A DNA stretch of 64,000 nt from Macrostomum lignano (taxonomy: Eukaryota). The translations under genes and the position numbers were made by a program. Each line of letters begins with the position of its first letter. Position 1 is the stretch's first letter. Below are positions 1,118 through 64,000 of this stretch, one piece after another. The notes below the pieces were generated by a model. That model did no database searches, had not been told where the DNA came from, and was given only the letters and a program-made list of their open reading frames with translations. Location of the stretch: assembly GCA_002269645.1 (NCBI GenBank), contig NIVC01002133.1:137598-201597 (forward strand), written 5' to 3'.

Positions 1118-1151
1118 ACCTCTGGCCGTCAAGATATTCAACGATTCAGCC

Positions 1152-1393
1152 AGAAGGTCGGATTTTTCCTATAAGCGTCAGTGTATTCAGTACACCCCTG
1201 AGCGCCAATCAGCACTGCACTTCATTGCAGCCTTGCCAAACTTCTGAATTTCATCAGCACGTCGACCATATGAGTCTGCATCAGATCTGACTTCGTTGGT
1301 CACTGGTCTTCCCCGAGGCGTTGCGAAGTTCTCAAGTTTCGCTGATCAAGCCTCGACATTGGGCAAGACTCAACTGCTGGACATTCTCAGCTA
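1152..1393. mobile_element. Interspersed repeat fragment of unknown class; inverted homolog at 43916-44174
   Basis: Shares AGAAGGTCGGATTTTTCC, GCGCCAATCAGCACTGC, TTTCATCAGCACGTCGACCA and TCTGACTTCGTTGGTCACTGGTCTT with the reverse complement of 43916-44174. Confidence 0.6.
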
Positions 1394-2928: not shown

Positions 2929-30549
<27,621 letters not shown>

Positions 30550-38522: not shown

Positions 38523-39288
38523 ATGGCGTCAGACGAAGAGCTGCTGATGGCCTTCAGGGCCATTGACAAGGGTAACACGGGTGTCATCAGTGCAGATGAG
38601 CTGAGAGCCTTCCTATACAAGAAGCGTTACAACGAACTGTTTGTTCAGGTGAGAAAGAAGCTTCAATTTACTTGCTACCCTTACCTGTAGACATGTTGGT
38701 AAATTTGACTTGCATGATTTGACAGAAATATTTGCGACTATTCGACCGCAACCACGACGGCAAGATCACTCTGGAGGAATATCAGAACACACTGAACGAG
38801 ATACCCAGAGCGCAGAGGCAGTAAGTGTCATGGGGTTCGTAGCTTGCTTTCAGACTATGGCCATTAAGGGGATTCTTCTGCAAAGCAACCGGGCAGAAGG
38901 TGGACTTCTACGGATCTATTTACTGATAAAGGGCAGTGTACCTTGAAAAAACTAAACTACAAGGCTAGGATTGATATTATTCTATCTGTTCAACATTTAC
39001 CGAGGTTCACAAGCCAGTTGCAACACTAAATCCCCTTTCCCTGCCACCTACGGAGCAATAGTATTCAGGTACAGCCAGTGGCGCCAACTGTTCGAGAGCA
39101 TCGACAAGGATGGCAACGGCTTCATCACTAAGAACGAGCTGCAGGCAGCCGTGCATGAGATGGGTGCCGGCTCTCTGTTTCATATGCGCGACTTCGACCG
39201 CTTCTTTGAGCAGGGCGACTCGGATCGCGACGGTCGGATGAACTATCGCGAGTTCCTGGAGTGGATGAACAAGTCGCAGACGGCCTGA
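38523..39288 (+). CDS. Four-EF-hand calcium-binding protein, 146 aa (calmodulin-like; resembles flatworm 16-kDa SME16), paralog 1
   Basis: Exons 38523-38648, 38726-38820, 39069-39288. EF loops DKGNTGVISADE, DRNHDGKITLEE, DKDGNGFITKNE, DSDRDGRMNYRE. Confidence 0.9.
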
Positions 39289-41320: not shown

Positions 41321-42693
41321 ATGGCCTCAGACCAGGACCTGCTGATGGCATTCAAGACCATAGACAAGTCTAACTCCGGGGAGATCACGGCGGACGAGCT
41401 GAGGACTTACCTGTACAAGAAGCGCTATAATGAGCTGTTTGTTCAGGTGCGCTAACTGAATTGAGCTCGCATCGCTTTTACACCAAAATGGTACCAGCGC
41501 CGCGATTTTTAACATTTCAGAGATACTTGCGCCTCTTCGATCGAAACCGGGACGGCAAGATCACTCTGGAGGAGTACCAGAACACGCTCAAGGAGATTCC
41601 CAAGGCTCAGAGAGAGTAAGAATTATGCAGCTTCATTTCACCTCTAGTCAATGGGAGATTAATTAGAAGTGAGAATTTCGACTCTTTTATGGTTCTTTAA
41701 AGATATAATTTTCTAACGATGACTCATCATTGTCTGAATGGCATTGCTTCGATAGCAAGTGGTCCGGTTAGCGTTTTTAAGTACAGAACATTACTTAATT
41801 CTGTAGTTTACTTACATTAAGTAGTTTACACGGGCAGATGATGGTCTCTGAGGAGGCCGGACCTTGGTCTGCTAAAGTGGGTTGGCGGTGCCAAGCCTTG
41901 CAAATAATAATGAGCTTTGCAGTTAGGACCTCATTTGGCTCCAGGCTACCCCAGCCGTAGGTCTGCTATCTTTGGGATGCAGCCCCCATAGGGGATTCAA
42001 TAACAGGTGGCCCGAGCTTATGCTCCTGGTGGACCCACGCTTATTCTCAGCGGTAGTGAGAATAACAGGGCTGATCCGCACCTCACGGCAGCCTCGTTTA
42101 ACAACAAAACACATGAGCTGCATGTCTCACCGCCTTTTGCACTAGGGATTTAACCTGATGATGGTTAATTGAATTGGTGCTAATGAGTTCTCTCGGTTTC
42201 AGTAATAAATATAGCCGAACAGGTAGTCTGAATGGAAAATTTATAAACTGACACTAAAGGTGCAGTATTGATGCAAACGTTTTTTCACACCTGGAATACA
42301 GAAAAGCTGTCGTTGTTTCATCACGTGCTAAGATCGCGTTTGCCTGATTATTAATTAATTACCTGATTCCACTAACAGTCATGGATAATATATGTGCTAA
42401 ATTGGCGAATTTCTACTCTTAGTAGCTACGGCTAAAAGTGCCGCTTATTTCTCTCACACAATCGAATCGAAAGGTACAGCCAGTGGCGCGAGTTGTTCGA
42501 GACCATCGACAAGGACGGCAACGGGCACATTACGAAGAAGGAGCTGAAATCCGTGGTTCGCCAGATGGGCTCGAACTCGCTGCTGAAGCTGGTCGACTTT
42601 GATCGCTTCTTCGAGGAGGGGGACTCGGACTACAGCGGCAAGCTGAACTATCGAGAGTTCCTGGACTGGCTGGACAGGTCCCAGAATGCCTGA
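41321..42693 (+). CDS. Four-EF-hand calcium-binding protein, 146 aa, paralog 2
   Basis: Exons 41321-41446, 41521-41615, 42474-42693, the same sizes as paralog 1 (126/95/220). Loops DKSNSGEITADE, DRNRDGKITLEE, DKDGNGHITKKE, DSDYSGKLNYRE. Confidence 0.9.
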
Positions 42694-43556
42694 CTGCCCA
42701 ATGCAGACTTGATTCATTTCAGTAACAAACTTTAAACGACTTGTCTGCCTATTAAAGCACTTTTTGAATGCATTGCTCAGTGGAATATAGTGGAGCGAGA
42801 GTTTGAAAATAATTGAAAATATCATTGGAGCCATAGGCAAATTCCGTCAAGGTCAATGTCAAGATTCGATAGAAATGCATGAAATTGATGACAAGAAAAA
42901 GCCGGAATTTAGTAGAATTTCACGAAATAATTGCTTGATAAACTTGTCAGTTGCACTTCAGACAAAAAAACCGAACTTGTCATTCGTAGTTCAAAGGCCC
43001 AGAAGGTGAGAAATTGAAGTTTTTGCAAAAAAACTAAAGATTCCTGTCTTGCTAATGATTTATGAGTATTGCGTCTTTCTGCTTGAGTGTTTACACAGCT
43101 TATCAACTTTGCCAAAATGCCAACTCATCACTCGAATTTTCTGGGGGGGGGGGCTCCAGCGGCTGCCGCGGTGTCCGACATGTGTCAGGCGAAAGACCCC
43201 AGCTTACCGCATATCGGTCTGGGAGGCAAGTGGGCATGGGGCTGGGAGCTACAGAACATGCTTGAAGTGCTGTCGCTTCCTCCCTTAAAAATAAAACTGG
43301 AGGCAAGGAAGTGTATTTGAGAGCAGCTGGGGAGCTCATTCTTGTCGAATTTCTTTCCCGCTGAGTGGCCCGAAAATTTCTCTCAAAATCGAATCGAGAA
43401 AACTATTTTGGGAAATTGAGTTGACATATTTGCTTAAAAATTGGACTTCTATGCGAGTCTATAGTGAGAGACATAAACAGATACAGCATAAGGACGCTCG
43501 CTATACCCGAAAATCGTACAAATTTTGCTGGATACCGGGATTCGCTCCAGAACGCA

Positions 43557-43789
43557 TTGGCGAGATAGGCGTATTGCTACTGTGGTAAATCACATTGGCG
43601 AGATAGGCGTATTGCTACTGTGGTAAATCACATTGGCGAGATAGGCGTATTGCTACTGTGGTAAATCACATTGGCGAGATAGGCGTATTGCTACTGTGGT
43701 AAATCACATTGGCGAGATAGGCGTATTGCTACTGTGGTAAATCACATTGGCGAGATAGGCGTATTGCTACTGTGGTAAATCATATTGGC
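43557..43789. repeat. 38-bp minisatellite x6 (TTGGCGAGATAGGCGTATTGCTACTGTGGTAAATCACA)
   Basis: Units at 43557, 43595, 43633, 43671, 43709, 43747; essentially identical. Confidence 0.96.
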
Positions 43790-44174: not shown

Positions 44175-45939
44175 CGTAGCCTGCGTTGCTCCGTTCCGGC
44201 ACTTTGCCAAAGCAATCATCGAGCATTGATGTTCTTCATCTTCAATGGGCGCATCTCAACAGAGTAATTTGTGCGATTTGTCGTCCTGCGGTCATACAGA
44301 AGACTTGGCTAAAACTAAATTTACTCGTAAACATATTGTCTGTCCGGAGCATTCAGTCTAACATAGAGATGCTCTTGATAATTTACTTCCTTCCTTGGCT
44401 TAAAATTTGCTGACTAAACAAGGATGAGTAAGGCAAGACGTAATTAAAGTCTGCCCGAGAAGCTTATCTATACATAGTGTTGCAGTCCATAGCATTAGCG
44501 TCAACTAAAGATTCACCACAGACATTCTTATTTGATCCAGCGTGCAAGAATGCTTTGGAAGTCACCATATGCGTGCAGAAATGCAAGTGTCAATGGTAAA
44601 AGCACCTTGGATTTACATGTGCACTCCGTGCAGGAATTTCAATCGTGCAAGAATGTAATGGGCAATGTTTCTATATTTAGCAGAACAGCCATAGACTACA
44701 AGCATAATCTTCTTTCCATCGTGCAAGAATGTTCAGACTAGCTCGCGCATATTTTGTCTATGGTTCAAGTCTAACTCCATACCCCCAGGTCCACCCTTTT
44801 CTACTTTAGCCACACATGTTGGATCAAATAAGAATGGGAATCAAGCACTTTGACTTGTGCGTCTATGGAAAAAACCCTCGTGCGCTACGCGCACTCGTGT
44901 TTCAGCCATTGACGCATTCCTCAGCGTGCTAGATTCCTCCAGTCTCGGTGGGCGTGAAACCCGTTTCATGCTCACCCGCCCACTGTCTTTGCACTGAATC
45001 AGTGGGGTTTGGGCCACAGACATTCTCACTGAGGGGCCTGCCATGCGTTTCAACCTCGATCATTGTTTGTGTTGTGCATTAGAGCTCAGCCTATAGCGTT
45101 AGTACATTATTGTTTTCCTGTTTATGTGACTTAAGCTTCGCTCAACTTTCGTTCTGTTGCTGTTTAGTTAGTCTATGGCATTATACTCTTTCTTTCGCAG
45201 AGCTCCCCTCTCGGTTTCAGTCCTTCTTCCCCTCAAGACCCCGTCTGGAGCTACGCGCTCAAGATTCCTGATTCAGCCGTCAAATACAAACGATAGCTTT
45301 GCACCGCTTATCATCTTAATCTCGACACACATCAGTTTGAGTACCCGTTTCCTCACATTTCTTTGTTAGAGTTTTTGGTCAAAAACATTTTTTACTGCTC
45401 TTTTCTATACTTAATAGTTATGTTTACGCGTATGCACGGATGCGGCTACCTTTGCCTCTCCAACGCAAATTGCGCACTCAACTTGCTGGTCTAGGAGAGA
45501 TCGGAACCGAAGCCGATGCACATGAAACAATCAAAATCACATTTGACAATTTAAGCTGTCATCAGAAGAGCTGTGTATTAATTTTGGACGAAATATATGT
45601 CTAACCATCCGTCCGCTATCGATCCAAGCATCTGCTCGATCAGGCGTTCGAAAATCCTTAAGAAAGCTGCTCGAACAGTGCTCGAAATTACGTGGAAACC
45701 GATATTTGGCAGCAAGCCAGTCGTTGTGCGACTAATTGTCTGCATTTCTTCTTAGCTTAGAGTTCTTGCATCTGCAGCTGCGAACGCGAAGGTGTAGTCA
45801 TCTTCCCAATCACAGCGGAGGTCGGGTCGTAGCATTTGTCTGTGACAAGCATTCCACAATCAGGAAGTGTTTCTCTCTATGAATGAATGAACTGAATAAA
45901 AACTGAATGAATGAAATTGATGAAGTTCAGTCACAGGAA

Positions 45940-46932
45940 AGTAGGCATATGTTATTCCTACGATCAAACTTTCTGAAGATCCGTAGTCAATCTTCACTTT
46001 GGCTCTTGCGCCTGCTGAGTCCTTCGATTCAGTCACAGCGACAGTGTTGATTTCTTCGCCATTCGCTTCGTTGCCACTTTTCTCTTCCGGTTGCTCACAC
46101 ATCCGGATATTTCTGGTGTTCATTCTGCTCCCTGCCTTTAGACTTAGTCTGCATTCTTGCTTGATGTGCCCGTTCTTTTGGCAAAATTTGCATTCCATGT
46201 TTCGAGCAAAGCAATCCCAGGGACGGTGGCCTGTCCTTTTGCATCTGTAGCAGACTCGATCGCACTTTTTGGTGCTTGGAGCGATGTCCGCTTGTCAGTC
46301 TGTTTGAACTGTAGCTTGGCAGTTGGTCTGCAGTCTGTTTTGCTGACTCATTGGATGGTTTTTCAATGTCTTTAGCCTGGGTTGCTTCGAAATTCTTGCT
46401 GGTTTTCACTCCTGGTGAGGTCAGAGCCTTCCTTTAGCAGCAGAGTCCTTAGCGGCTTTGAAAAGCTCTGTAGGACTATCAGATTGCGTAGCAGACGATC
46501 CTCGAAGCTGAGCTTCACTGTGCTCTTTTCCTTCAGGCTTGAACTCGACGTTCAATTTTTAGCTTTTCGGTCTCATGGACACTGTTAGATGCACCTTGAA
46601 ATAGAGAGCTAAGCACTTCCTTCGTTGCTTCGTAGCCTTGTTCATAGCTTACAGTTTGCAGCAAATTCGGATTTTTGGCTCTGCTAGAAGCAATAATATC
46701 GCTTGCTACTTTCGTCAGCTATTCCTTGCAATTCCATGAACACCTCGACTTCTTGCACATAGTCGTTCCACTTATCTGCATTGTTGAGCGGATCTTCGTC
46801 TGGATCAATGTGCCCAATGCTGTAGAAATGTGCTGAGGCCATTTTCTTAATAGTAACATCCTCTTGGGTTACGGACGTAGCTTTTCTCTTTTCACCGCTG
46901 CTACCAATCTTTTCTCTCATCCCATCTCTCAT
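45940..46932 (-). mobile_element. Decayed Ty3/Gypsy-type LTR retrotransposon gag (plus start of protease)
   Basis: Tandem CCHC knuckles CYRCKRTGHRPWDC and CKFCQKNGHIKQEC (~46155-46252). Gag-like WNDYVQEVEVFMELQGI and LRTLLLKEGSDLT. Protease-like KVKIDYGSSESLI. Multiple stops and frameshifts. Confidence 0.8.
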
Positions 46933-48420: not shown

Positions 48421-51400
48421 ATGTTACCAACCATGGCTCAAGCCGGTTGGTGCCTGCTCTTTGCAATTTGCCTGGGCGGCATAACTGCCTGTAAGTTTCT
48501 TTCAGGGTCGGTTGCATTGCGGGTAGTGTTGTCAGGAGTCAAATTACCTTCATAGCTCGTAGATGATTAGTCTCTACTCGCAGACTAAGAACTTACTCTA
48601 AAGAACTGCTTGGAGTGTTTTGGTGGTGAGGATATCTTTAAAATTCTGTGGGATGTTTCCATATCTTGGCGCATATTTACATGTATAGTTAATTGAAAGT
48701 AATGTGCCGCTGCAAGCAGATTATCCTGCAAGCACGTGATTGGCACAAGTTGTCATCCAGCAGTGACTGAATAGAGCAATTGTATAGCTCCTAATGCTGA
48801 CGAAGAATGCCTTAGTGGTGCTACTCGTAGTATGAGACTATTGTATCATAATTACTGTTGCATCCTTTCAATCGATGTTGTCAGATTTTATAGCATCTGC
48901 GCCTATTTAGTATTTGCCTTTAGGAATGAAACCAAAATTGTAGAAGGATTTTTATGCGTTTTTATTTTTATCACTTTTGCGGTGGTGATTAAAACTTTCA
49001 AACTTTGTACATCGAAGCTCAAAGAAAGAGCAAAACGTCCTAAACAACACGCATTGTAGCCCATGGCTTCGAATACAAAGGATGCTACAAAGATAGTAGA
49101 AATCGTGACCTGCCAAAACTGGCACAGTCATCGACCAGCATGAGCGTGGAGAGGTGTGGCCGTCTGTGCAGCTCGTACCGCTACTTCGGTGTGCAGTTCT
49201 CCAAGGAGTGCTGGTGCGGCAACTCGTACGGCAAGCACGGAAAGCGACCAGGACGCGAGTGCAACATGGCCTGCAGAGGCAACTCCAGAGAGAAGTGCGG
49301 CTCTCACTGGAGAAATAATGTCTATGCAACTCGGTCGACTGGCTCCCGTGAGTACATTCTCCGCATCAACACCTGAAAACGCTTGACATGACGCTGGCCA
49401 GAAAAGAGAGTACAGTATCGATATATACGCGCCGCTTGCCCTTGTAGACAGCACATGAACTGCAGGGTCCACCAATGAAAGGGTTAGCTTTAAAATCGCT
49501 GTCTCTCTAGGCTCAGTGGATCTAAAATACACATTACTAGCTCGTACGTTTAGTTCTCCTTGACAGTGGTCGGCAAAAATTTATGGTCTATTTCAACTTG
49601 CAAGTAGCCTATTTAATGATGACATGAGCGGTGGCCGATAGAATTACAAAATACAGTCACGTACTACGTACATGAAAGCTTAGAGAGGTGGCCAGACAAA
49701 GCGAAGAAAACGGGAGAGAATGATGTGCATTTACAATGCGTGCGGATAATATAGGTTACTTAGTTAGTGCCCAGAGTTTAGCATTCTGGCACTACCCCAA
49801 ACACTATACGAGCGTATATCCAAGTTTCCTTGATGCATCTGTAATATAGCCCATTTTGATGAATCCTGACGGTGTCCACACGGATCAGAGTCCCTGATCT
49901 AAAAATATCCCGATGCCTTTGTCATCAGTTTAACTCCTTATGCATTTTGTGCTCACCAAATTCAATTGTGTTTTACAAATGCTCACTTGGCTTACTTTAT
50001 TAAATTCGATTTGGATTTAAAGTTTTTAATATGCAGTTGCCGTTTCTAATATGCAACACTAGCTCGTAAAACTTACACTCAAATTTTGAATAATATTATG
50101 AAACGTTAAATGCCCACGAGCGCTAGGCTGCAAACGGGTGAGATCTACACCGTCAAGCCTGTCGAGCTACAAGTCCAAGGTCGGTCAGTGCTTCGAGTTC
50201 CGAGTGACTGGTCGATTGAGAGGAAACGTGTGGGGGAGCGGGATCTACACTGCCGACTCGTCGCTTAGCAAGGCCGCCGTACATGCAGGAATTGTGAGGA
50301 ACGGCCAGACAAAGTACATCCGTGTTCGAGTGTTGAGGGGTCGCAGCTCGTACCGATCCACTAGACGCAACGGCGTCAAGACGAGACGCTACGGCAGATA
50401 CAGGCTTAGCTACAAGTTCATCGGCTCGCGATCGGTTCCTAGCAAGAAGCCTAGGTGTAAGTTTCGCTAGTCGTATGTCATGGTATTCTGAAGCTGTTTA
50501 TAATGAAAATCACTTTGATTTCGATAAAATATACATTTCCTATCGCCGACTGAGTTTTACGTTGCATGTGTAATCACAATGAAGAAAAAGTATAATATTT
50601 TTGCAGCATGCCCATCAGGATCAAGGTTGTCTGTGACCTCGCGTCGCACCTGCCGCTGTGCCCCGATATCTCCTGGACGGAAGTTGGGCTCGCTGATCTT
50701 TGTTATTGACATTACCGGAAGCATGGGAAGCGTGATTAACTCGGTAAAGAGCAACATCCGGCGAATTCTCTCTGCTAACACTCGATTTAGCAACTATGTT
50801 GTTGCAACCTTTGGCGATCCGTATGTGAGGCGAGTAATCAAGACGAGGAGTATCACTGCTGTGAGAAACTTCCTGAAAAGATTGTCTGCCAGAGGAGGCG
50901 GTGACTGTCCCGAGTACGCTATGTCAGGAGCTCTGGATGCTGCAAAGAGCGCGGACTCGAACTCCGTCATGCTCCTGTTTACTGACGCTTCAGCCAAGGA
51001 CAAGAGACGAGTGGGCCAGGTGTCTTCACTGGCGAAGAGGAAGCGAATTCGAGTGTTTACCGTCGAGAGCGGAAACATGTGTGGAAAAGCGCCAGAGTTT
51101 AAGCAGTTGGCCCGGAAGTCTTTTGGAGAGGTCTCCCGACTACGATCTGGCACTTTCAACAAGGTAGGGCGTTTTATTAGAGATTCAGCTATGGCATGGC
51201 TTGCTCACGGACAACAAGAACAACGACAAACGTATAAGTATTTTCTACTCGTATTTCTATCCACAGTTGATGGAGTTCCTCAGACGCGCCGTAAAAGGAA
51301 GAATCAGCTTCAGCGCATTCCCAAGAAGCCCGTCGGCGCTCAAAAAGGCTCTCAGAGGCAGTGAGTATTTCTTTTTAACATACCTTACATACGAGCAACA

Positions 51401-54400
51401 GTTGCAGCCAAGAGGATTATCCGTGGCATTGAAACCTACTCGTAATTTACTACTTATGGTATGAAACAGGCGCGGAGCCTGTTAAATTGGATAATAATTT
51501 ACTATAAAAGGGACTCCACAAACATCAGTTACCTGACAGTAACGATTTCAATAATATAATTGCAGAATGCCGTTGTCGAACTGTCAGGCACCGTCGATGC
51601 AAACGATTTTCATCGCGTGAGTGCCAGATTATTTTTTATGGTGCAATACCACTATCTAAATTCGGCTTTTAAATAATATTATGAAACGTTAAATGCCCAC
51701 GAGCGCTAGGCTGCAAACGGGTGAGATCTACACCGTCAAGCCTGTCGAGCTACAAGTCCAAGGTCGGTCAGTGCTTCGAGTTCCGAGTGACTGGTCGATT
51801 GAGAGGAAACGTGTGGGGGAGCGGGATCTACACTGCCGACTCGTCGCTTAGCAAGGCCGCCGTACATGCAGGAATTGTGAGGAACGGCCAGACAAAGTAC
51901 ATCCGTGTTCGAGTGTTGAGGGGTCGCAGCTCGTACCGATCCACTAGACGCAACGGCGTCAAGACGAGACGCTACGGCAGATACAGGCTTAGCTACAAGT
52001 TCATCGGCTCGCGATCGGTTCCTAGCAAGAAGCCTAGGTGTAAGTTTCGCTAGTCGTATGTCATGGTATTCTGAAGCTGTTTATAATGAAAATCACTTTG
52101 ATTTCGATAAAATATACATTTCCTATCGCCGACTGAGTTTTACGTTGCATGTGTAATCACAATGAAGAAAAAGTATAATATTTTTTGCAGCATGCCCATC
52201 AGGATCAAGGTTGTCTGTGACCTCGCGTCGCACCTGCCGCTGTGCCCCGATATCTCCTGGACGGAAGTTGGGCTCGCTGATCTTTGTTATTGACATTACC
52301 GGAAGCATGGGAAGCGTGATTATCTCGGTAAAGAGCAACATCCGGCGAATTCTCTCTGCTAACACTCGATTTAGCAACTATGTTGTTGCAACCTTTGGCG
52401 ATCCGTATGTGAGGCGAGTAATCAAGACGAGGAGTATCACTGCTGTGAGAAACTTCCTGAAAAGATTGTCTGCCAGAGGAGGCGGTGACTGTCCCGAGTA
52501 CGCTATGTCAGGAGCTCTGGATGCTGCAAAGAGCGCGGACTCGAACTCCGTCATGCTCCTGTTTACTGACGCTTCAGCCAAGGACAAGAGACGAGTGGGC
52601 CAGGTGTCTTCACTGGCGAAGAGGAAGCGAATTCGAGTGTTTACCGTCGAGAGCGGAAACATGTGTGGAAAAGCGCCAGAGTTTAAGCAGTTGGCCCGGA
52701 AGTCTTTTGGAGAGGTCTCCCGACTACGATCTGGCACTTTCAACAAGGTAGGGCGTTTTATTAGAGATTCAGCTATGGCATGGCTTGCTCACGGACAACA
52801 AGAACAACGACAAACGTATAAGTATTTTCTACTCGTATTTCTATCCACAGTTGATGGAGTTCCTCAGACGCGCCGTAAAAGGAAGAATCAGCTTCAGCGC
52901 ATTCCCAAGAAGCCCGTCGGCGCTCAAAAAGGCTCTCAGAGGCAGTGAGTATTTCTTTTTAACATACCTTACATACGAGCAACAGTTGCAGCCAAGAGGA
53001 TTATCCGTGGCATTGAAACCTACTCGTAATTTACTACTTATGGTATGAAACAGGCGCGGAGCCTGTTAAATTGGATAATAATTTACTATAAAAGGGACTC
53101 CACAAACATCAGTTACCTGACAGTAACGATTTCAATAATATAATTGCAGAATGCCGTTGTCGAACTGTCAGGCACCGTCGATGCAAACGAGTTTCATCGC
53201 GTGAGTGCCAGATTATTTTTTATGGTGCAATACCACTATCTAAATTTGGCTTTTAAATAATATTAAACTAATCTATTAATTAAACTATAATTAAACTATA
53301 ATAATATTACACTATATCTACTAATAGATGTCTCAATGAACAATGGTTTATAGACTAGACTAATCCAAGAGAGGTGCGCGGTGCCAGCCGATTGAATCTA
53401 GTTGGAGCCTTTAATATTCGTAGTCGTAACTAAAATGATGCCCTTCTGACCTTCCAGCGGCCGGAGTGAAGTACGTCGGCTGCTTCAAGGACAATCGCAA
53501 CAGGGATTTGCCGGTAGTTTACACTGCCAACTACAAGACGACAAAGGCTTACTGCTTCCGCTATTGTCGAGCCAAGGGCTACAGGTACTTTGGTCTGCAA
53601 AACGGCAATGCGTGCACCTGCGGAAACACCGTCGGTCGGTATGGAAGAGCGTCGAGCAAGGATTGCGCCAGGTCCACCTGTAAGGGCGACAAGAGGTCCA
53701 AATGTGGTGGACCATGGAGGAACAGCGTCTTCACAACCGGACTGAAGCCCAAGAGCTTCAAGAGTAAGTGTGCAGTCAAGCAGAAAATTCGCTTTCCACG
53801 CTCGCTCGTAGGCTCGTAGGGTACATAAGCCTTTTTGAAAAGTAAAACGGTGAAGTGAGACATTTTGGCCCTGAAAGTTTCAATCCAGTTTGAATGTATT
53901 TCCAACCAATGAACGCGCTCCAGCAAGCAAAAGCTGAGCACATGATCCCAGTCTTAGCTAATGAAAAGTAGACATCCTTTCCCTACAACAGACTGAACCT
54001 TCGGTTCCCCCGAACAATTAGAACCTACCATAGACTTGAGTTAATCTCGAGATTGCGAACACCAAATACAATACAACGGTCAGTAAGTTAACATCAATTG
54101 ATTGCATCATCAGGAAAAGTTAGTCGAATCCGCCGCCTTAGTTATTTGGCTCTCACATTGGTAATTGAAGTTATTATTGAGCTTAGTAGTGAGAGATCAG
54201 AAGACCAAAGACACCCAAGTTATAGACATATATAAAAAAATTTCAACGGGCTGGCTCTGTCCGTGTCTTGGATTAGGAGCCAACCAGCTGGGGTTTTACT
54301 GACCTGCGTGTGCCCACTATTTCTTTTTTAAGCACCTGGAATGTCTCACATTGGCTGCTTTGTTGACGGCCGGAGGCGCGATCTTCCAACTGTGGGAGGA

Positions 54401-57400
54401 AAAGGCAGCATAACTGTTGGAAGGTGCTACGGACTGTGCAAGAAAAAGGGATTCCGATTCTTTGGCGTTCAGATAGGAAAACAGTGCTGGTGCGGCAACC
54501 ACTACGGTCGCTACGGCCGACGCGACAAACGCGAGTGCCGCTACCAGTGCAGAGGAGACAAGACGACCTACTGTGGCGGCTCCTGGAGAAACGACGTGTA
54601 CGCTACCGGACTCGAAGAGCACGCCTCCGGAGTTACCCTACTTGGCTGCTTCCGCGACAATTCGAAGCGCGACTTGCCCCTTGTACACGGCGCCGGTCAC
54701 CGGACCACAAAGGCGTACTGTCTGAAGTACTGCAAGTCTCGCGGCTACAGGTACTTTGGCCTCCAGGCTGGATCTGCGTGCACCTGCGGCAACAAATATG
54801 GCAGCTTTGGCCGAGTCAATGCAAAGCAGTGCAGAACGCGCTGTAGAGGCGACAAAAGACGAACCTGCGGCGGCTCTTGGAGAAACTCTGTCTACTCGAC
54901 TGGAATCGGCAGCAAGCCTGTTCGTCGTGAGTACAACAGTACAGATTCGCAATTGATTGCTTTTTTGTCCACCTAGCTCGTGTTTATATTAGTTTGCAGC
55001 TCTCAGTTGAGAACTATGCGATGCCTCACTAATTGCGCGCGCCGTTTCTCTTCCTTCCATAAATACGAGTAGTTTCAAGCAATATAAGGTGGCTAATTTG
55101 AAATTGTGCGCAAATTAGTCTGACATCTTGAAACTTTAAATGCATTAAATATCATCAGCGAAAGCGTGGGCGTCCAAGAGTTGAGCCTTTCTCATAAGTT
55201 GTTTACATAAACGACAGCAAATAATGTGTACAGTAGTAGTCTGTCGCTACCGCTTTCAGTGCCCGGATTGAAGCATCTCGGCTGCTATCTGGACAAGAGC
55301 TCCAGAGATCTTAGAAAGCTGGTTCTCTCCGGATCAGTTACTGTGCCAAAGTGCTACAAGGCGTGCAAAGCCAGGAAATATCGCTTCTTCGGTGTGCAAA
55401 ATGGCTACCAGTGCTGGTGCGGCAACCACTATGGCAGGTACAGAATCCGATCAAACTTGGAGTGCAGAGTACAGTGCAGAGGAGACAAGTCGACCTACTG
55501 CGGAGGCGCGTGGAGAAACAATGTCTACGCGACGGGTGTTGTCGTCGCCAGCAAAGGTAACCGAGTCTGTCAACAGGTTTACGCTTGTAGCTTTCTGGAG
55601 ATCCAAGCAATCCTAGTGTACTGCTGTTTTTCGTTGCGCCATCTAGCCATTTAGCCAGCAGCACTACTAATAGATGTCTCAATGAACAATGGTTTATAGA
55701 CTAGAATAATCCAAGAGAGGTGGGCGATGCCAGCCGATTGAATCTAGTTGGAGCGTTTAATATTCGTAGTCGTAACTAAAATGATGCCCTTCTGATCTTC
55801 CAGCGGCCGGAGTGAAGTACGTCGGCTGCTTAAGGACAATCGCTACAGGGATTTGCCGGTAGTTTACACTGCCAACTACAAGACGACAAAGGCTTACTGC
55901 TTCCGCTATTGTCGAGCCAAGGGCTACAGGTACTTTGGTCTGCAAAACGGCAATGCGTGCACCTGCGGAAACACCGTCGGTCGGTATGGAAGAGCGTCGA
56001 GCAAGGATTGCGCCAGGTCCACCTGTAAGGGCGACAAGAGGTCCAAATGTGGTGGACCATGGAGGAACAGCGTCTTCACAACCGGACTGAAGCCCAAGAG
56101 CTTCAAGAGTAAGTGTGCAGTCAAGCAGAAAATTCGCTTTCCACGCTCGCTCGTAGGCTCGTACGGTATATTAGATATTTTTGAATGTAAAACGAGATTG
56201 CTCTGTACGGTTTGGATGGGGTTTTGCTGACCTGCATGTGCCCACTATTTCTCTTTTAAGCACCTGGAATGTCTCACATTGGCTGCTTTGTTGACGGCCG
56301 GAGGCGCGATCTTCCAACTGTGGGAGGAAAAGGCAGCATAACTGTTGGAAGGTGCTACGGACTGTGCAAGAAAAAGGGATTCCGATTCTTTGGCGTTCAG
56401 ATAGGAAAACAGTGCTGGTGCGGCAACCACTACGGTCGCTACGGCCGACGCGACAAACGCGAGTGCCGCTACCAGTGCAGAGGAGACAAGACGACCTACT
56501 GTGGCGGCTCCTGGAGAAACGACGTGTACGCTACCGGACTCGAAGAGCACGCCTCCGGAGTTACCCTACTTGGCTGCTTCCGCGACAATTCGAAGCGCGA
56601 CTTGCCCCTTGTACACGGCGCCGGTCACCGGACCACAAAGGCGTACTGTCTGAAGTACTGCAAGTCTCGCGGCTACAGGTACTTTGGCCTCCAGGCTGGA
56701 TCTGCGTGCACCTGCGGCAACAAATATGGCAGCTTTGGCCGAGTCAATGCAAAGCAGTGCAGAACGCGCTGTAGAGGCGACAAAAGACGAACCTGCGGCG
56801 GCTCTTGGAGAAACTCTGTCTACTCGACTGGAATCGGCAGCAAGCCTGTTCGTCGTGAGTACAACAGTACAGATTCGCAATTGATTGCTTTTTTGTCCAC
56901 CTAGCTCGTGTTTATATTAGTTTGCAGCTCTCAGTTGAGAACTATGCGATGCCTCACTAATTGCGCGCGCCGTTTCTCTTCCTTCCATAAATACGAGTAG
57001 TTTCAAGCAATATAAGGTGGCTAATTTGAAATTGTGCGCAAATTAGTCTGACATCTTGAAACTTTAAATGCATTAAATATCATCAGCGAAAGCGTGGGCG
57101 TCCAAGAGTTGAGCCTTTCTCATAAGTTGTTTACATAAACGACAGCAAATAATGTGTACAGTAGTAGTCTGTCGCTACCGCTTTCAGTGCCCGGATTGAA
57201 GCATCTCGGCTGCTATCTGGACAAGAGCTCCAGAGATCTTAGAAAGCTGGTTCTCTCCGGATCAGTTACTGTGCCAAAGTGCTACAAGGCGTGCAAAGCC
57301 AGGAAATATCGCTTCTTCGGTGTGCAAAATGGCTACCAGTGCTGGTGCGGCAACCACTATGGCAGGTACAGAATCCGATCAAACTTGGAGTGCAGAGTAC

Positions 57401-60400
57401 AGTGCAGAGGAGACAAGTCGACCTACTGCGGAGGCGCGTGGAGAAACAATGTCTACGCGACGGGTGTTGTCGTCGCCAGCAAAGGTAACCGAGTCTGTCA
57501 ACAGGTTTACGCTTGTAGCTTTCTGGAGATCCAAGCAATCCTAGTGTACTGCTGTTTTTCGTTGCGCCATCTAGCCATTTAGCCAGCAGCACTACTAATA
57601 GATGTCTCAATGAACAATGGTTTATAGACTAGAATAATCCAAGAGAGGTGGGCGATGCCAGCCGATTGAATCTAGTTGGAGCGTTTAATATTCGTAGTCG
57701 TAACTAAAATGATGCCCTTCTGATCTTCCAGCGGCCGGAGTGAAGTACGTCGGCTGCTTTAAGGACAATCGCTACAGGGATTTGCCGGTAGTTTACACTG
57801 CCAACTACAAGACGACAAAGGCTTACTGCTTCCGCTATTGTCGAGCCAAGGGCTACAGGTACTTTGGTCTGCAAAACGGCAATGCGTGCACCTGCGGAAA
57901 CACCGTCGGTCGGTATGGAAGAGCGTCGAGCAAGGATTGCGCCAGGTCCACCTGTAAGGGCGACAAGAGGTCCAAATGTGGTGGACCATGGAGGAACAGC
58001 GTCTTCACAACCGGACTGAAGCCCAAGAGCTTCAAGAGTAAGTGTGCAGTCAAGCAGAAAATTCGCTTTCCACGCTCGCTCGTAGGCTCGTACGGTATAT
58101 TAGATATTTTTGAATGTAAAACGAGATTGCTCTGTACGGTTTGGATGGGGTTTTGCTGACCTGCATGTGCCCACTATTTCTCTTTTAAGCACCTGGAATG
58201 TCTCACATTGGCTGCTTTGTTGACGGCCGGAGGCGCGATCTTCCAACTGTGGGAGGAAAAGGCAGCATAACTGTTGGAAGGTGCTACGGACTGTGCAAGA
58301 AAAAGGGATTCCGATTCTTTGGCGTTCAGATAGGAAAACAGTGCTGGTGCGGCAACCACTACGGTCGCTACGGCCGACGCGACAAACGCGAGTGCCGCTA
58401 CCAGTGCAGAGGAGACAAGACGACCTACTGTGGCGGCTCCTGGAGAAACGACGTGTACGCTACCGGACTCGAAGAGCACGCCTCCGGAGTTACCCTACTT
58501 GGCTGCTTCCGCGACAATTCGAAGCGCGACTTGCCCCTTGTACACGGCGCCGGTCACCGGACCACAAAGGCGTACTGTCTGAAGTACTGCAAGTCTCGCG
58601 GCTACAGGTACTTTGGCCTCCAGGCTGGATCTGCGTGCACCTGCGGCAACAAATATGGCAGCTTTGGCCGAGTCAATGCAAAGCAGTGCAGAACGCGCTG
58701 TAGAGGCGACAAAAGACGAACCTGCGGCGGCTCTTGGAGAAACTCTGTCTACTCGACTGGAATCGGCAGCAAGCCTGTTCGTCGTGAGTACAACAGTACA
58801 GATTCGCAATTGATTGCTTTTTTGTCCACCTAGCTCGTGTTTATATTAGTTTGCAGCTCTCAGTTGAGAACTATGCGATGCCTCACTAATTGCGCGCGCC
58901 GTTTCTCTTCCTTCCATAAATACGAGTAGTTTCAAGCAATATAAGGTGGCTAATTTGAAATTGTGCGCAAATTAGTCTGACATCTTGAAACTTTAAATGC
59001 ATTAAATATCATCAGCGAAAGCGTGGGCGTCCAAGAGTTGAGCCTTTCTCATAAGTTGTTTACATAAACGACAGCAAATAATGTGTACAGTAGTAGTCTG
59101 TCGCTACCGCTTTCAGTGCCCGGATTGAAGCATCTCGGCTGCTATCTGGACAAGAGCTCCAGAGATCTTAGAAAGCTGGTTCTCTCCGGATCAGTTACTG
59201 TGCCAAAGTGCTACAAGGCGTGCAAAGCCAGGAAATATCGCTTCTTCGGTGTGCAAAATGGCTACCAGTGCTGGTGCGGCAACCACTATGGCAGGTACAG
59301 AATCCGATCAAACTTGGAGTGCAGAGTACAGTGCAGAGGAGACAAGTCGACCTACTGCGGAGGCGCGTGGAGAAACAATGTCTACGCGACGGGTGTTGTC
59401 GTCGCCAGCAAAGGTAACCGAGTCTGTCAACAGGTTTACGCTTGTAGCTTTCTGGAGATCCAAGCAATCCTAGTGTACTGCTGTTTTTCGTTGCGCCATC
59501 TAGCCATTTAGCCAGCAGCACTACTAATAGATGTCTCAATGAACAATGGTTTATAGACTAGAATAATCCAAGAGAGGTGGGCGATGCCAGCCGATTGAAT
59601 CTAGTTGGAGCGTTTAATATTCGTAGTCGTAACTAAAATGATGCCCTTCTGATCTTCCAGCGGCCGGAGTGAAGTACGTCGGCTGCTTTAAGGACAATCG
59701 CTACAGGGATTTGCCGGTAGTTTACACTGCCAACTACAAGACGACAAAGGCTTACTGCTTCCGCTATTGTCGAGCCAAGGGCTACAGGTACTTTGGTCTG
59801 CAAAACGGCAATGCGTGCACCTGCGGAAACACCGTCGGTCGGTATGGAAGAGCGTCGAGCAAGGATTGCGCCAGGTCCACCTGTAAGGGCGACAAGAGGT
59901 CCAAATGTGGTGGACCATGGAGGAACAGCGTCTTCACAACCGGACTGAAGCCCAAGAGCTTCAAGAGTAAGTGTGCAGTCAAGCAGAAAATTCGCTTTCC
60001 ACGCTCGCTCGTAGGCTCGTACGGTATATTAGATATTTTTGAATGTAAAACGAGATTGCTCTGTACGGTTTGGATGGGGTTTTGCTGACCTGCATGTGCC
60101 CACTATTTCTCTTTTAAGCACCTGGAATGTCTCACATTGGCTGCTTTGTTGACGGCCGGAGGCGCGATCTTCCAACTGTGGGAGGAAAAGGCAGCATAAC
60201 TGTTGGAAGGTGCTACGGACTGTGCAAGAAAAAGGGATTCCGATTCTTTGGCGTTCAGATAGGAAAACAGTGCTGGTGCGGCAACCACTACGGTCGCTAC
60301 GGCCGACGCGACAAACGCGAGTGCCGCTACCAGTGCAGAGGAGACAAGACGACCTACTGTGGCGGCTCCTGGAGAAACGACGTGTACGCTACCGGACTCG

Positions 60401-63400
60401 AAGAGCACGCCTCCGGAGTTACCCTACTTGGCTGCTTCCGCGACAATTCGAAGCGCGACTTGCCCCTTGTACACGGCGCCGGTCACCGGACCACAAAGGC
60501 GTACTGTCTGAAGTACTGCAAGTCTCGCGGCTACAGGTACTTTGGCCTCCAGGCTGGATCTGCGTGCACCTGCGGCAACAAATATGGCAGCTTTGGCCGA
60601 GTCAATGCAAAGCAGTGCAGAACGCGCTGTAGAGGCGACAAAAGACGAACCTGCGGCGGCTCTTGGAGAAACTCTGTCTACTCGACTGGAATCGGCAGCA
60701 AGCCTGTTCGTCGTGAGTACAACAGTACAGATTCGCAATTGATTGCTTTTTTGTCCACCTAGCTCGTGTTTATATTAGTTTGCAGCTCTCAGTTGAGAAC
60801 TATGCGATGCCTCACTAATTGCGCGCGCCGTTTCTCTTCCTTCCATAAATACGAGTAGTTTCAAGCAATATAAGGTGGCTAATTTGAAATTGTGCGCAAA
60901 TTAGTCTGACATCTTGAAACTTTAAATGCATTAAATATCATCAGCGAAAGCGTGGGCGTCCAAGAGTTGAGCCTTTCTCATAAGTTGTTTACATAAACGA
61001 CAGCAAATAATGTGTACAGTAGTAGTCTGTCGCTACCGCTTTCAGTGCCCGGATTGAAGCATCTCGGCTGCTATCTGGACAAGAGCTCCAGAGATCTTAG
61101 AAAGCTGGTTCTCTCCGGATCAGTTACTGTGCCAAAGTGCTACAAGGCGTGCAAAGCCAGGAAATATCGCTTCTTCGGTGTGCAAAATGGCTACCAGTGC
61201 TGGTGCGGCAACCACTATGGCAGGTACAGAATCCGATCAAACTTGGAGTGCAGAGTACAGTGCAGAGGAGACAAGTCGACCTACTGCGGAGGCGCGTGGA
61301 GAAACAATGTCTACGCGACGGGTGTTGTCGTCGCCAGCAAAGGTAACCGAGTCTGTCAACAGGTTTACGCTTGTAGCTTTCTGGAGATCCAAGCAATCCT
61401 AGTGTACTGCTGTTTTTCGTTGCGCCATCTAGCCATTTAGCCAGCAGCACTACTAATAGATGTCTCAATGAACAATGGTTTATAGACTAGAATAATCCAA
61501 GAGAGGTGGGCGATGCCAGCCGATTGAATCTAGTTGGAGCGTTTAATATTCGTAGTCGTAACTAAAATGATGCCCTTCTGATCTTCCAGCGGCCGGAGTG
61601 AAGTACGTCGGCTGCTTTAAGGACAATCGCTACAGGGATTTGCCGGTAGTTTACACTGCCAACTACAAGACGACAAAGGCTTACTGCTTCCGCTATTGTC
61701 GAGCCAAGGGCTACAGGTACTTTGGTCTGCAAAACGGCAATGCGTGCACCTGCGGAAACACCGTCGGTCGGTATGGAAGAGCGTCGAGCAAGGATTGCGC
61801 CAGGTCCACCTGTAAGGGCGACAAGAGGTCCAAATGTGGTGGACCATGGAGGAACAGCGTCTTCACAACCGGACTGAAGCCCAAGAGCTTCAAGAGTAAG
61901 TGTGCAGTCAAGCAGAAAATTCGCTTTCCACGCTCGCTCGTAGGCTCGTACGGTATATTAGATATTTTTGAATGTAAAACGAGATTGCTCTGTACGGTTT
62001 GGATGGGGTTTTGCTGACCTGCATGTGCCCACTATTTCTCTTTAAGCACCTGGAATGTCTCACATTGGCTGCTTTGTTGACGGCCGGAGACGCGATCTTC
62101 CAACTGTGGGAGGAAAAGGCAGCATAACTGTTGGAAGGTGCTACGGACTGTGCAAGAAAAAGGGATTCCGATTCTTTGGCGTTCAGATAGGAAAACAGTG
62201 CTGGTGCGGCAACCACTACGGTCGCTACGGCCGACGCGACAAACGCGAGTGCCGCTACCAGTGCAGAGGAGACAAGACGACCTACTGTGGCGGTTCCTGG
62301 AGAAACGACGTGTACGCAACGGGTGTTGTCGTCGCCAGCAAAGGTAACCGAGTCTGTCAACAGGTTTACGCTTGTAGCTTTCTGGAGATCCAAGCAATCC
62401 TAGTGTACTGCTGTTTTTCGTTGCGCCATCTAGCCATTTAGCCAGCAGCACTACTAATAGATGTCTCAATGAACAATGGTTTATAGACTAGACTAATCCA
62501 AGAGAGGTGGGCGATGCCAGCCGATTAAATCTAGTTGGAGCCTTTAATATTCGTAGTCGTAACTAAAATGATGCCCTTCTGATCTTCCAGCGGCCGGAGT
62601 GAAGTACGTCGGCTGCTTCAAGGACAATCGCAACAGGGATTTGCCGGTAGTTTACACTGCCAACTACAAGACGACAAAGGCTTACTGCTTCCGCTATTGT
62701 CGAGCCAAGGGCTACAGGTACTTTGGTCTGCAAAACGGCAATGCGTGCACCTGCGGAAACACCGTCGGTCGGTATGGAAGAGCGTCGAGCAAGGATTGCG
62801 CCAGGTCCACCTGTAAGGGCGACAAGAGGTCCAAATGTGGTGGACCATGGAGGAACAGTCTTCACAACCGGACTGAAGCCCAAGAGCTTCAAGAGTAAGT
62901 GTGCAGTCAAGCAGAAAATTCGCTTTCCACGCTCGCTCGTAGGCTCGTAGGGTACATAAGACATTTTGTAAAGTAAAACGGTGAAGTGAGACATTTTGGC
63001 CCTGAAAGTTTCAATCCAGTTTGAATGTATTTCCAACCAATGAACGCGCTCCAGCAAGCAAAAGCTGAGCACATGATCCCAGTCTTAGCTAATGAAAAGT
63101 AGACATCCTTTCCCTACAACAGACTGAACCTTCGGTTCCCCCGAACAATTAGAACCTACCATAGACTTGAGTTAATCTCGAGATTGCGAACACCAAATAC
63201 AATACAACGGTCAGTAAGTTAACATCAATTGATTGCATCATCAGGAAAAGTTAGTCGAATCCGCCGCCTTAGTTATTTGGCTCTCACATTGGTAATTGAA
63301 GTTATTATTGAGCTTAGTAGTGAGAGATCAGAAGACCAAAGACACCCAAGTTATAGACATATATAAAAAATTTCAACGGGCTGGCTCTGTCCGTGTCTTG

Positions 63401-64000
63401 GATTAGGAGCCAACCAGCTGGGGTTTTACTGACCTGCGTGTGCCCACTATTTCTTTTTTAAGCACCTGGAATGTCTCACATTGGCTGCTTTGTTGACGGC
63501 CGGAGGCGCGATCTTCCAACTGTGGGAGGAAAAGGCAGCATAACTGTTGGAAGGTGCTACGGACTGTGCAAGAAAAAGGGATTCCGATTCTTTGGCGTTC
63601 AGATAGGAAAACAGTGCTGGTGCGGCAACCACTACGGTCGCTACGGCCGACGCGACAAACGCGAGTGCCGCTACCAGTGCAGAGGAGACAAGACGACCTA
63701 CTGTGGCGGCTCCTGGAGAAACGACGTGTACGCTACCGGACTCGAAGAGCACGCCTCCGGAGTTACCCTACTTGGCTGCTTCCGCGACAATTCGAAGCGC
63801 GACTTGCCCCTTGTACACGGCGCCGGTCACCGGACCACAAAGGCGTACTGTCTGAAGTACTGCAAGTCTCGCGGCTACAGGTACTTTGGCCTCCAGGCTG
63901 GATCTGCGTGCACCTGCGGCAACAAATATGGCAGCTTTGGCCGAGTCAATGCAAAGCAGTGCAGAACGCGCTGTAGAGGCGACAAAAGACGAACCTGCGG
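48421..64000 (+). CDS. Giant secreted Lys/Arg-rich modular protein: signal peptide - WSC - 2x(LCCL-VWA) - at least 21 WSC domains; 3' end beyond the window
   Basis: Exons: 48421-48490 (signal peptide), 49060-49347 (WSC); 50127-50456, 50607-51163, 51267-51360, 51566-51616 and their duplicate 51710-52039, 52191-52747, 52851-52944, 53150-53200. Then A/B/C WSC exons: 53458-53763, 54333-54926, 55260-55556; 55804-56108 (1-bp del), 56261-56854, 57188-57484; 57732-58037, 58190-58783, 59117-59413; 59661-59966, 60119-60712, 61046-61342; 61590-61895, 62047-62343; 62591-62894 (2-bp del), 63463-end. Module junctions are phase 1. Confidence 0.88.
50127..50456 (+). CDS. LCCL-domain exon, copy 1 (copy 2 at 51710-52039)
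   Basis: VWGSGIYTADSSLSKAAVHAG and TRRNGVKT..YG..RLSYKF motifs. Confidence 0.85.
50607..51360 (+). CDS. Hemicentin/VWA7-type VWA domain exons, copy 1 (copy 2 at 52191-52944)
   Basis: LIFVIDITGSM (MIDAS-like), FGDP, GGGDCPEYAMSG, MLLFTDASAKD, FKQLA..SFGEV. Intron 51164-51266. Confidence 0.85.
53318..64000 (+). repeat. Tandem array of a ~1.93-kb unit carrying 3 exons and 4 WSC domains
   Basis: Period 1928-1929 (B exons at 54333, 56261, 58190, 60119). Each domain has the 8-Cys WSC pattern GC(F/Y).D...RDL...C...C...(R/K)YFG.Q....C.CG.....G......C...C.GD....CGG.WRN.VY.TG. Confidence 0.95.

Follow-up and report, generated by a model that had tools for sequence, protein, structure and literature searches.

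A transcribed gene of Macrostomum lignano encoding a giant, strongly basic modular protein joining WSC, LCCL and VWA domains in amplified phase-1 exon cassettes

What is encoded at the right-hand end of a 64-kb stretch of the Macrostomum lignano genome (contig NIVC01002133.1, positions 137,598 to 201,597), where exon-like segments of nearly identical sequence follow one another up to the last nucleotide? The question was raised by an earlier reading of the bare sequence (hereafter the original prediction), in which the segments were assembled into a secreted, highly positive protein of about 2,880 residues, with a signal peptide, one WSC domain, two LCCL+VWA cassettes and at least 21 further WSC domains. 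We asked in turn whether this is one real gene, what its product resembles and what it could do. All coordinates are positions in this 64-kb stretch, called the window. The answer to the first question is that M. lignano has here a genuine, transcribed gene, whose product is a giant extracellular protein of modular build; the answers to the other two are graded below.

The gene model, on the + strand from 48433, was assembled from the raw sequence and its stop-to-stop frames. It consists of 26 GT-AG exons coding, in order, for a signal peptide, a WSC domain, two cassettes of LCCL, VWA and a short cysteine motif, and an array of WSC domains. All 26 exons have strong donors (GTAAGT, GTGAGT, GTAACC or GTAGGG) and pyrimidine-rich acceptors ending in AG. 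Phase 1 is found at each cassette boundary, the single internal exception being a phase-0 intron within the VWA. The domain count of the original prediction was reproduced (1 + 21 WSC domains, the last one cut by the window end at 64000, and two LCCL+VWA cassettes), as was its description of the exons as phase-1 modules; the summed exon length, 8642 nt, corresponds to exactly 2880 codons.

The assignment of the domains, which the original prediction had made by eye, was borne out by a Pfam scan of the spliced protein, with scores far above the curated cutoffs: WSC (PF01822) gave E=2e-85, VWA_4 (PF25106) E=5e-67 and LCCL (PF03815) E=2e-26. For WSC the score was 281.5 bits over the N-terminal 1202 residues, against a cutoff of 27.8, and 63-70 bits for each exon type; LCCL reached 57 bits (cutoff 22.6) and VWA_4 117 bits per cassette (cutoff 27). 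Each of the five WSC domain types contains eight cysteines, and the cysteine columns are invariant in the alignment of the WSC family. Sequence matches in the PDB were to the WSC domain of Kremen-1, the sensor domain of yeast Wsc1, a Fusarium glyoxal oxidase and the LCCL domain of cochlin. An AlphaFold model of the double-WSC exon B, built from 14 aligned sequences, had a mean predicted local distance difference test score (pLDDT) of 90.5; searched with Foldseek, it found the Kremen WSC first (root-mean-square deviation 1.0-1.5 A), then those of Wsc1 and glyoxal oxidase. As modelled, the array domains have the PAN/apple-like WSC fold.

The 5' part of the gene starts with exon 1 (48433..48490, ending in phase 1), which provides the start codon and the signal peptide MAQAGWCLLFAICLGGITA; a further in-frame ATG lies upstream at 48421. 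Exon A (49060..49347, phase 1-1) codes for the first WSC domain, with eight cysteines (Pfam WSC E=1.9e-19; Kremen-1 WSC E=2.6e-8). The first cassette opens with an LCCL exon (50127..50456, phase 1-1; Pfam LCCL E=2.2e-15; cochlin LCCL 1jbi E=2.4e-5), whose core YTxDSxxxxAAVHAG, here IYTADSSLSKAAVHAG, agrees with the consensus of the LCCL alignment. The LCCL domain of cochlin has four cysteines forming two disulfides; the exon found here has two instead of four and was therefore regarded as coding for a variant LCCL. The VWA is split between exon a (50607..51163, phase 1 to 0; Pfam VWA_4 E=6e-34), which carries a CPSG..C.C motif and most of the VWA_4, and the 94-nt exon b (51267..51360, phase 0 to 1), with the C-terminal helix and an SFSAFP tail; the latter exon is also present in the database protein P0002, and its junction aligns without gap with that of the paralog PAA86075.1, described below. 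Set against the metal ion-dependent adhesion site pattern (DxSxS...T...D), the VWA shows D-I-T-G-S, GGGDCPE and LFTDA, all conserved in the paralogs, a comparison to be read with the low confidence of the VWA model. A small Cys-motif exon, KCRCRTVRHRRCKRFSS (51566..51616; 51 nt, 17 codons, phase 1-1), closes the cassette, and its CxCR...C motif is kept in the paralogs P0211, P0210 and P0216 and in the metagenome homolog P0021. The second cassette (51710..53200, a period of 1583-1584 bp) is nearly identical to the first, with its LCCL exon at 51710-52039, VWA exons a and b at 52191-52747 and 52851-52944, and Cys exon at 53150-53200.

From 53458 on, the gene is an array of a three-exon unit, in which exon C codes for one WSC domain, exon B for two and exon D for one. 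Unit U1 (53458..55803, 2346 bp, exons C1 53458-53763, B1 54333-54926 and D1 55260-55556) is of a long-intron type. It is followed by U2 (55804..57731, 1928 bp; C2 55804-56108, with a 1-bp deletion, B2 56261-56854, D2 57188-57484), U3 (1929 bp from 57732; C3 57732-58037, B3 58190-58783, D3 59117-59413) and U4 (1929 bp, ending at 61589; C4 59661-59966, B4 60119-60712, D4 61046-61342). U5 (61590..62590) is shortened to 1001 bp and has only C5 (61590-61895) and a hybrid exon BD with a single WSC (62047-62343). U6 (62591..64000) comprises C6 (62591-62894, with a 2-bp deletion after 62857) and B5 (63463-64000), which is cut by the window end. When both indels were filled according to the sister copies, the coding sequence amounted to 2881 codons with no stop; this repaired version was used for the composition analyses.

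That the model describes a transcribed gene is supported by database entries derived from the same species. The LCCL-VWA cassette is 99-100% identical to UniProt A0A1I8JEL7 and A0A1I8JEG0 and to GenBank PAA76877.1 (BOX15_Mlig023956g1, partial; P0003), all from M. lignano, which bears out the original prediction in its naming of Macrostomum, and by these matches the gene is represented in databases by uncharacterised fragments only. The GenBank annotation of the Mlig_3_7 assembly was derived only from RNA sequencing and transcriptome assemblies (PMC5730564). PAA76877.1 has the N-terminus of exon 1 and the model's junctions between signal peptide and exon A, A and LCCL, and LCCL and VWA; a second transcript-derived protein, the paralog PAA86075.1, aligns without gap over the junctions of VWA exon a, VWA exon b and Cys exon (48% identity), and protein P0121 contains the B to D and D to C junctions. 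A second copy of the locus, about 98% identical, lies on contig NIVC01000784.1 of the Mlig_3_7 assembly (L001 below). Between the two copies substitutions were found at 4 of 1376 exon positions as against 27 of 2200 non-exon positions (Fisher p=0.0026), a difference read as constraint on the exons. One of the fragments differs from the model: A0A1I8JEL7 (P0001) omits VWA exon b and reads the small Cys exon (51566-51616, 53150-53200) in another frame, as the acidic sequence NAVVELSGTVDANEFSS. That reading needs a 52-nt exon, and both copies in the window are of 51 nt, so that the alternative looks like the product of an indel in another assembly.

The most conspicuous property of the product is its charge. 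Lysine and arginine make up 20.9% of the repaired 2881 codons, aspartate and glutamate 4.7%, and cysteine 6.9%; the calculated isoelectric point is 10.3 and the net charge about +470. The counts of the original prediction were recovered for the single-WSC exon C (22 K/R against 4 D/E), for the LCCL (2 acidic residues) and for the 19 K/R of the first WSC of exon B; in the latter the acidic residues number 8 rather than 6 if the LEEHAS linker is counted. The comparison with relatives shows the same bias in each type of domain. The LCCL has 29 K/R against 2 D/E, or +24.5 net per 100 residues, where its relatives are at about 0 (n=12). The VWA has 43 K+R for 12 D+E over 217 residues (about 20% versus 5.5%), whereas the metagenome homolog P0021 is neutral (9.5% versus 10%). 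The WSC unit, at +15.5 net per 100 residues, differs from distant WSC proteins, which are neutral or acidic, while its closest relatives are also basic. All three domain types are thus strongly basic and, as they are unrelated folds, we argue that the charge is a selected property of the whole protein.

Two features of composition accompany this bias. At the conserved C-x-G-D loop of the WSC domain, three of the four array domains have RGD and the remaining one has KGD (e.g. 58400-58420 and 58700-58715), for a total of 15 RGD and 6 KGD in the part of the protein contained in the window. These were set aside as candidate integrin sites: the GD is a conserved position of the WSC and the preceding R or K varies among relatives. 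Since the relatives read SGD or NGD at this place, the RGD and KGD are probably a by-product of the enrichment in R and K. The other feature is the complete lack of N-x-S/T sequons in the 2,881 codons of the repaired coding sequence (48433-64000), many N, S and T notwithstanding; judging from this count, N-glycosylation seems to be avoided.

How new is this combination? Among the matches given by word-indexed searches of 5.8 billion proteins, none outside M. lignano contained WSC, LCCL and VWA together, or WSC with either LCCL or VWA_4; likewise, WSC+LCCL+VWA was absent outside M. lignano among the top HMMER matches from 1.84 billion representative sequences. The original prediction, which did not recognise the architecture from any characterised protein, was right to this extent. 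It has to be tempered on two accounts: the pairing of LCCL with VWA is a theme of cochlin and vitrin, and WSC proteins were already prominent among prostate-limited transcripts of M. lignano (PMC5977470, PMC6953679). On domain content, then, the architecture is a new combination of known domains rather than a wholly unrecognisable one.

The arrangement LCCL-VWA is that of cochlin, vitrin and akhirin, for which binding to the matrix, adhesion of cells and sequestration of bacteria have been described (PMC8395899). Like them (signal peptide, LCCL, two VWA), the present protein is predicted to be extracellular and has its LCCL directly before a VWA. It departs from them in having one VWA and a Cys motif after each LCCL, in the duplication of the whole as a cassette, in the attachment of 22 or more WSC domains, in an LCCL that is extremely basic and has two rather than four cysteines, and in a VWA of the hemicentin/VWA7 type (PF25106) where theirs is of the collagen-like type. 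Neither the SP-LCCL-VWA-VWA order (SP, signal peptide), nor the collagen-type VWA, nor orthology was found; the LCCL alone matches cochlin. With a single VWA_4 per LCCL and only the LCCL matching, the protein is therefore cochlin-like in theme and not a member of the family. As to the hemicentin/VWA7 group, it shares the Pfam family PF25106, and the nearest relatives outside Macrostomum (P0217 and P0219) carry VWA7_N, Ig_VWA7 and the hemicentin GBD; the identity is only 34-38%, and none of these accompanying domains exists in the present protein.

Closer relatives were found within the species. A HMMER scan of the 1.84 billion representatives with VWA exon a, which is a contiguous exon, returned 1381 relatives; the closest named ones were mostly M. 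lignano proteins with tandem copies of the same cassette, and most of the closest were basic. These paralogs (PAA86075.1/Mlig022224, A0A1I8I2M0, A0A1I8GUE1 and A0A1I8I8N4) share with the present protein a CPxG..CxC motif, the VWA_4, an SFxxFP tail and a CxCR..C motif, at 43-52% identity; their cassettes are also in tandem and they are mostly strongly basic, but they have neither WSC nor LCCL. PAA86075.1, with 4,112 residues and 26% K/R overall, has a signal peptide, two cassettes, a VWD domain and a repeat tail of about 2,700 residues rich in K, R and Cys (30% K/R, 9.5% Cys). The family was read from positions 10001-26244 of another locus of the Mlig_3_7 assembly (L003, contig NIVC01000294.1) and from the proteins P0210-P0214. 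No literature was found on these paralogs and, by its cassette, the gene is a member of a previously unnoticed M. lignano family of basic VWA_4-cassette proteins.

The WSC domains have their own set of known counterparts. Multi-WSC fungal proteins, yeast Wsc1, the glyoxal/copper-radical oxidases and Kremen show the same fold, the 8-Cys pattern and, for some, tandem WSC. They are, however, cell-wall sensors, enzymes with targeting modules or a Wnt co-receptor, are neutral or acidic, and in none of them is the WSC joined to LCCL or VWA.

From the modules and the charge, a function can be proposed. The protein would be a multivalent scaffold, both polycation and lectin, of a gland secretion or of the extracellular matrix. 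Its many WSC modules and its LCCL would bind glycans, its net charge of about +470 would bind polyanions such as sulfated or acidic glycoconjugates and microbial or cell surfaces, and its VWA modules would mediate protein-protein assembly; acting jointly, the modules could cross-link or condense material in the secretion or matrix. Reasoning from sequence, we lean towards this picture, in which polyanionic glycoconjugates are cross-linked or condensed by a multivalent polycation of lectin type, with appreciable reserve. Which tissue would produce it is a guess, as are the adhesive, mucus, antimicrobial and seminal roles put forward in the original prediction, and we rank the prostate (seminal fluid) before mucus and innate defence, and the latter before adhesive or cement glands.

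For the prostate, the protein would be a structural component of the ejaculate or one that binds sperm or the antrum, and some of the short WSC 'Mlig-pro' transcripts may be pieces of giant genes; this we hold as a tentative possibility. Among the prostate-limited transcripts that have an annotation, those of WSC type (labelled 'WSC domain-containing', 'fungistatic metabolite' or 'transmembrane receptor') predominate (PMC5977470 Table S1), and the authors caution that several fragments may derive from a single protein (PMC5977470); Mlig-pro46 and other seminal fluid protein candidates resemble WSCD2 (PMC6953679), and RNA815_80.4, a transcript of the prostate, encodes two WSC domains (PMC4490696). 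The prostate-limited WSC proteins (Mlig-pro set, RNA815_80.4, Mlig-pro46) thus share with ours the species, the domain class and a signal peptide, and they make WSC proteins a major class of secreted product in this worm. They differ in being encoded by transcripts of about 1 kb with about two WSC, none annotated with LCCL or VWA, and annotations for LCCL, VWA, cochlin or hemicentin are absent from all the listed prostate transcripts. Identity with RNA815_80.4, the one such sequence compared, was rejected, as its sequence is that of a different, A+T-rich gene. The link to the prostate is through domain class only.

A role in defence, as a scaffold of epidermal mucus or rhabdite-type material trapping microbes through the WSC domains (binding of beta-glucan or chitin type), the cochlin-like LCCL and the polycationic charge, appears doubtful. 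The LCCL domains of cochlin and factor C are tied to lipopolysaccharide binding and bacterial sequestration (PMC8395899). The WSC fold is common to fungal cell-wall-binding modules, and antimicrobial binders typically have an extreme positive charge. All of this is by analogy, and of the four canonical cysteines the present LCCL has only two.

Unlikely, but with some parallels in flatworms, is a role as cohesive part of a temporary adhesive or of an egg-cementing secretion, comparable to the polycationic Mlig-ap1/ap3 but with the charge placed on folded domains. Flatworm adhesion, that of M. lignano included, relies on giant polycationic cohesive proteins inhibited by heparin (PMC6410801, PMC9229212), an LCCL domain exists in an adhesive-organ protein of Minona (PMC6745481), and the paralog PAA86075.1 joins VWA_4 cassettes, a VWD domain and 2,700 residues of 30% K/R. 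The cohesive proteins Mlig-ap1, Mile-ap3 and Tmed-ap3 are giant, secreted, repetitive and polycationic, as the present protein is predicted to be, and have lectin or protein-interaction domains; they need their charge to function. However, they carry it on low-complexity G/R/K repeats and have CTL, vWD, C8, TIL and EGF as domains; in the present protein it resides on folded, disulfide-rich domains, and neither the CTL/vWD/TIL/EGF/TSP1 set nor the low-complexity GRK repeats that characterise ap1, ap2 and ap3 were found. The adhesive proteome and RNA interference in M. lignano gave Mlig-ap1 and Mlig-ap2, with CTL, vWD, TIL, EGF and TSP1 (PMC6410801), and neither WSC nor VWA is mentioned in PMC6410801 or PMC9229212. 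Identity with Mlig-ap1 or Mlig-ap2 was rejected on the difference between the domain sets.

Several points weigh against the view of a single intact gene for a secreted, glycan-binding protein. Glycan binding is not general among animal WSC domains, that of Kremen being a protein-interaction module. A PDB sequence search with the VWA exon gave no match; in the AlphaFold2 model of P0001 the LCCL was well modelled (pLDDT about 90) but the VWA poorly, for an overall mean pLDDT of 53.8, because the alignment was not deep enough. Literature look-ups for Mlig023956, its protein and the UniProt identifiers returned no mention; those for Macrostomum with LCCL, cochlin or hemicentin returned nothing, and Mlig023956 had no match in the supplements of PMC5816591 and PMC7336406. 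The literal spliced frame hits a TAG at 55860-55862, codon 1222, and contains 27 stops altogether, and at the sister locus GenBank has two gene models, a partial one at the 5' side and, separate from it and downstream, one coding for 931 residues of WSC. Finally, the C-terminus lies past the window end, so that of the original prediction's 'secreted' only the signal peptide stands as basis, and the protein may have a membrane anchor instead.

The interrupted frame contradicts the original prediction, for which the frame was still open at 64000. In exon C2 (55804-56108) one T is missing from the TTT run after 55831 (TT, versus TTT in the sister copies), which causes the stop, and only the 2-bp deletion in C6 (after 62857) brings the array back in frame. 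Taken at face value, the frameshifts would make this a decaying or truncated gene, with a product of about 1,221 residues (signal peptide, WSC, two LCCL-VWA cassettes and four WSC) or a pseudogenised array tail. Such a reading accounts for the literal translation, with its 27 stops before the frame recovers, but we consider it quite improbable. The missing base falls in a homopolymer and is the sole difference, across 1929 bp, between U2 and the intact U3 and U4; every downstream exon is intact in its own frame; and the phase-1 symmetric exons can be skipped without loss of frame, omission of both C2 and C6 giving 2677 codons with no stop. The independent assembly copy L001 has, moreover, 1-bp deletions of its own at other places (the VWA exon, with two, and the fourth C exon, with one), and such private indels, differing from one copy to the other, were read as the signature of consensus errors of long-read assembly. 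From these comparisons the two frameshifts are probably assembly errors, although their being artefacts is not proven.

Equally improbable is that two genes are present, one for the cochlin-like 5' part and another for the WSC array (brought together, for example, by trans-splicing), or that the product is a receptor or sensor with a transmembrane anchor in the manner of Wsc1, Kremen or polycystin-1: for all that M. lignano transcripts are frequently polycistronic precursors (PMC5730564) and that the best-known WSC proteins sit in membranes, the 5' model in GenBank stops exactly at the 1-bp deletions of L001, the downstream one begins inside exon B without start codon or signal peptide of its own, transcripts overlapping repeats were deliberately removed from the annotation (PMC5730564), and between the Cys exon and C1, which an intron of 257 bp separates, the exon phase runs on without a break. 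The current gene models at the locus are apparently fragmented by assembly indels and repeat filtering.

For the intact gene, the array itself tells how it was built. Repeat periods were obtained from k-mer spacing and BLAST; Tandem Repeats Finder, whose periods go no higher than 500 bp, does not pick up the array. U3 and U4 are 100% identical, and U1 and U6, the two units of the long-intron type, are 99.6% alike. The intron between C and B exists in a long form of 569 bp (53764-54332) and a short form of 152 bp (56109-56260), i.e. with 417 bp extra in the former. Together U1 to U5 (2346+1928+1929+1929+1001 bp) form a higher-order unit of 9133 bp, which restarts at 62591 and is reflected in k-mer spacing peaks at 9131-9133. 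The hybrid exon of U5, where the 5' half of B is joined to the 3' end of D, looks like the product of an unequal crossover. In L001 there is one LCCL-VWA cassette instead of two and all units are of the long type, with a period of 2345 bp, the long intron being the sole form there when the window has mostly the short one. As read from these alignments, unequal crossing-over or gene conversion keeps duplicating, deleting and homogenising the phase-1 symmetric cassettes, each genome copy going its own way, and their number therefore varies between copies. Part of the differences between the arrays could be assembly uncertainty.

The remainder of the window holds further features. Exons of a Slo-type (BK/Slack-like) potassium channel are found on the + strand at 17593-18129, 24733-25233 and 26968-27492, with a TVGYGD pore and Slo-like RCK pieces. 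An exon with a pair of EF-hands lies at 38956-39285 (+; Pfam EF-hand_7 E=1e-13), and an open stretch at 42457-42846 (-) is EF-hand-like by eye without a Pfam match. Just upstream of the gene, at 45863-46294 (-), a frame with gag-like CCHC zinc knuckles is probably a retroelement remnant. A long low-complexity run of micro- or minisatellite type covers 500-15200; its strand asymmetry is extreme, with a GC skew of up to +0.56 at 6-8 kb and of about -0.5 over 8 to 16 kb. The part of the window richest in G+C (63.5%) contains an ATG-started frame of 518 codons at 32594-34147 (-), with no Pfam match, and a 38-bp tandem repeat (6.2 copies, 99% matches) lies at 43555-43789.

To return to the gene, a broader proposal, which at present we regard as speculative and rather unlikely, is that together with the basic VWA_4-cassette giants such as PAA86075.1 it defines a class of secretion scaffold of macrostomid flatworms that has not been described before, polycationic and made of folded domains. 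Its members would act as lectin polymers, condensing or gluing polyanionic glycans in, for instance, ejaculate, egg cement or adhesive, by a mechanism distinct from that of the low-complexity K/R cohesive proteins, and their copy number would be tuned fast by unequal crossing-over of phase-1 exon cassettes. If the gene model holds, the product would be among the largest and most charged folded-domain lectin-type proteins of a model flatworm, and its gene a clean case of exon-cassette amplification and concerted evolution within a gene. Short 'WSC' transcripts in expression screens may be pieces of giant genes. The model, should it hold, would bear on research into bioadhesion and seminal fluid in M. 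lignano. It would also suggest a testable design principle, by which stable disulfide-rich modules both bind glycans multivalently and carry a polycationic charge.

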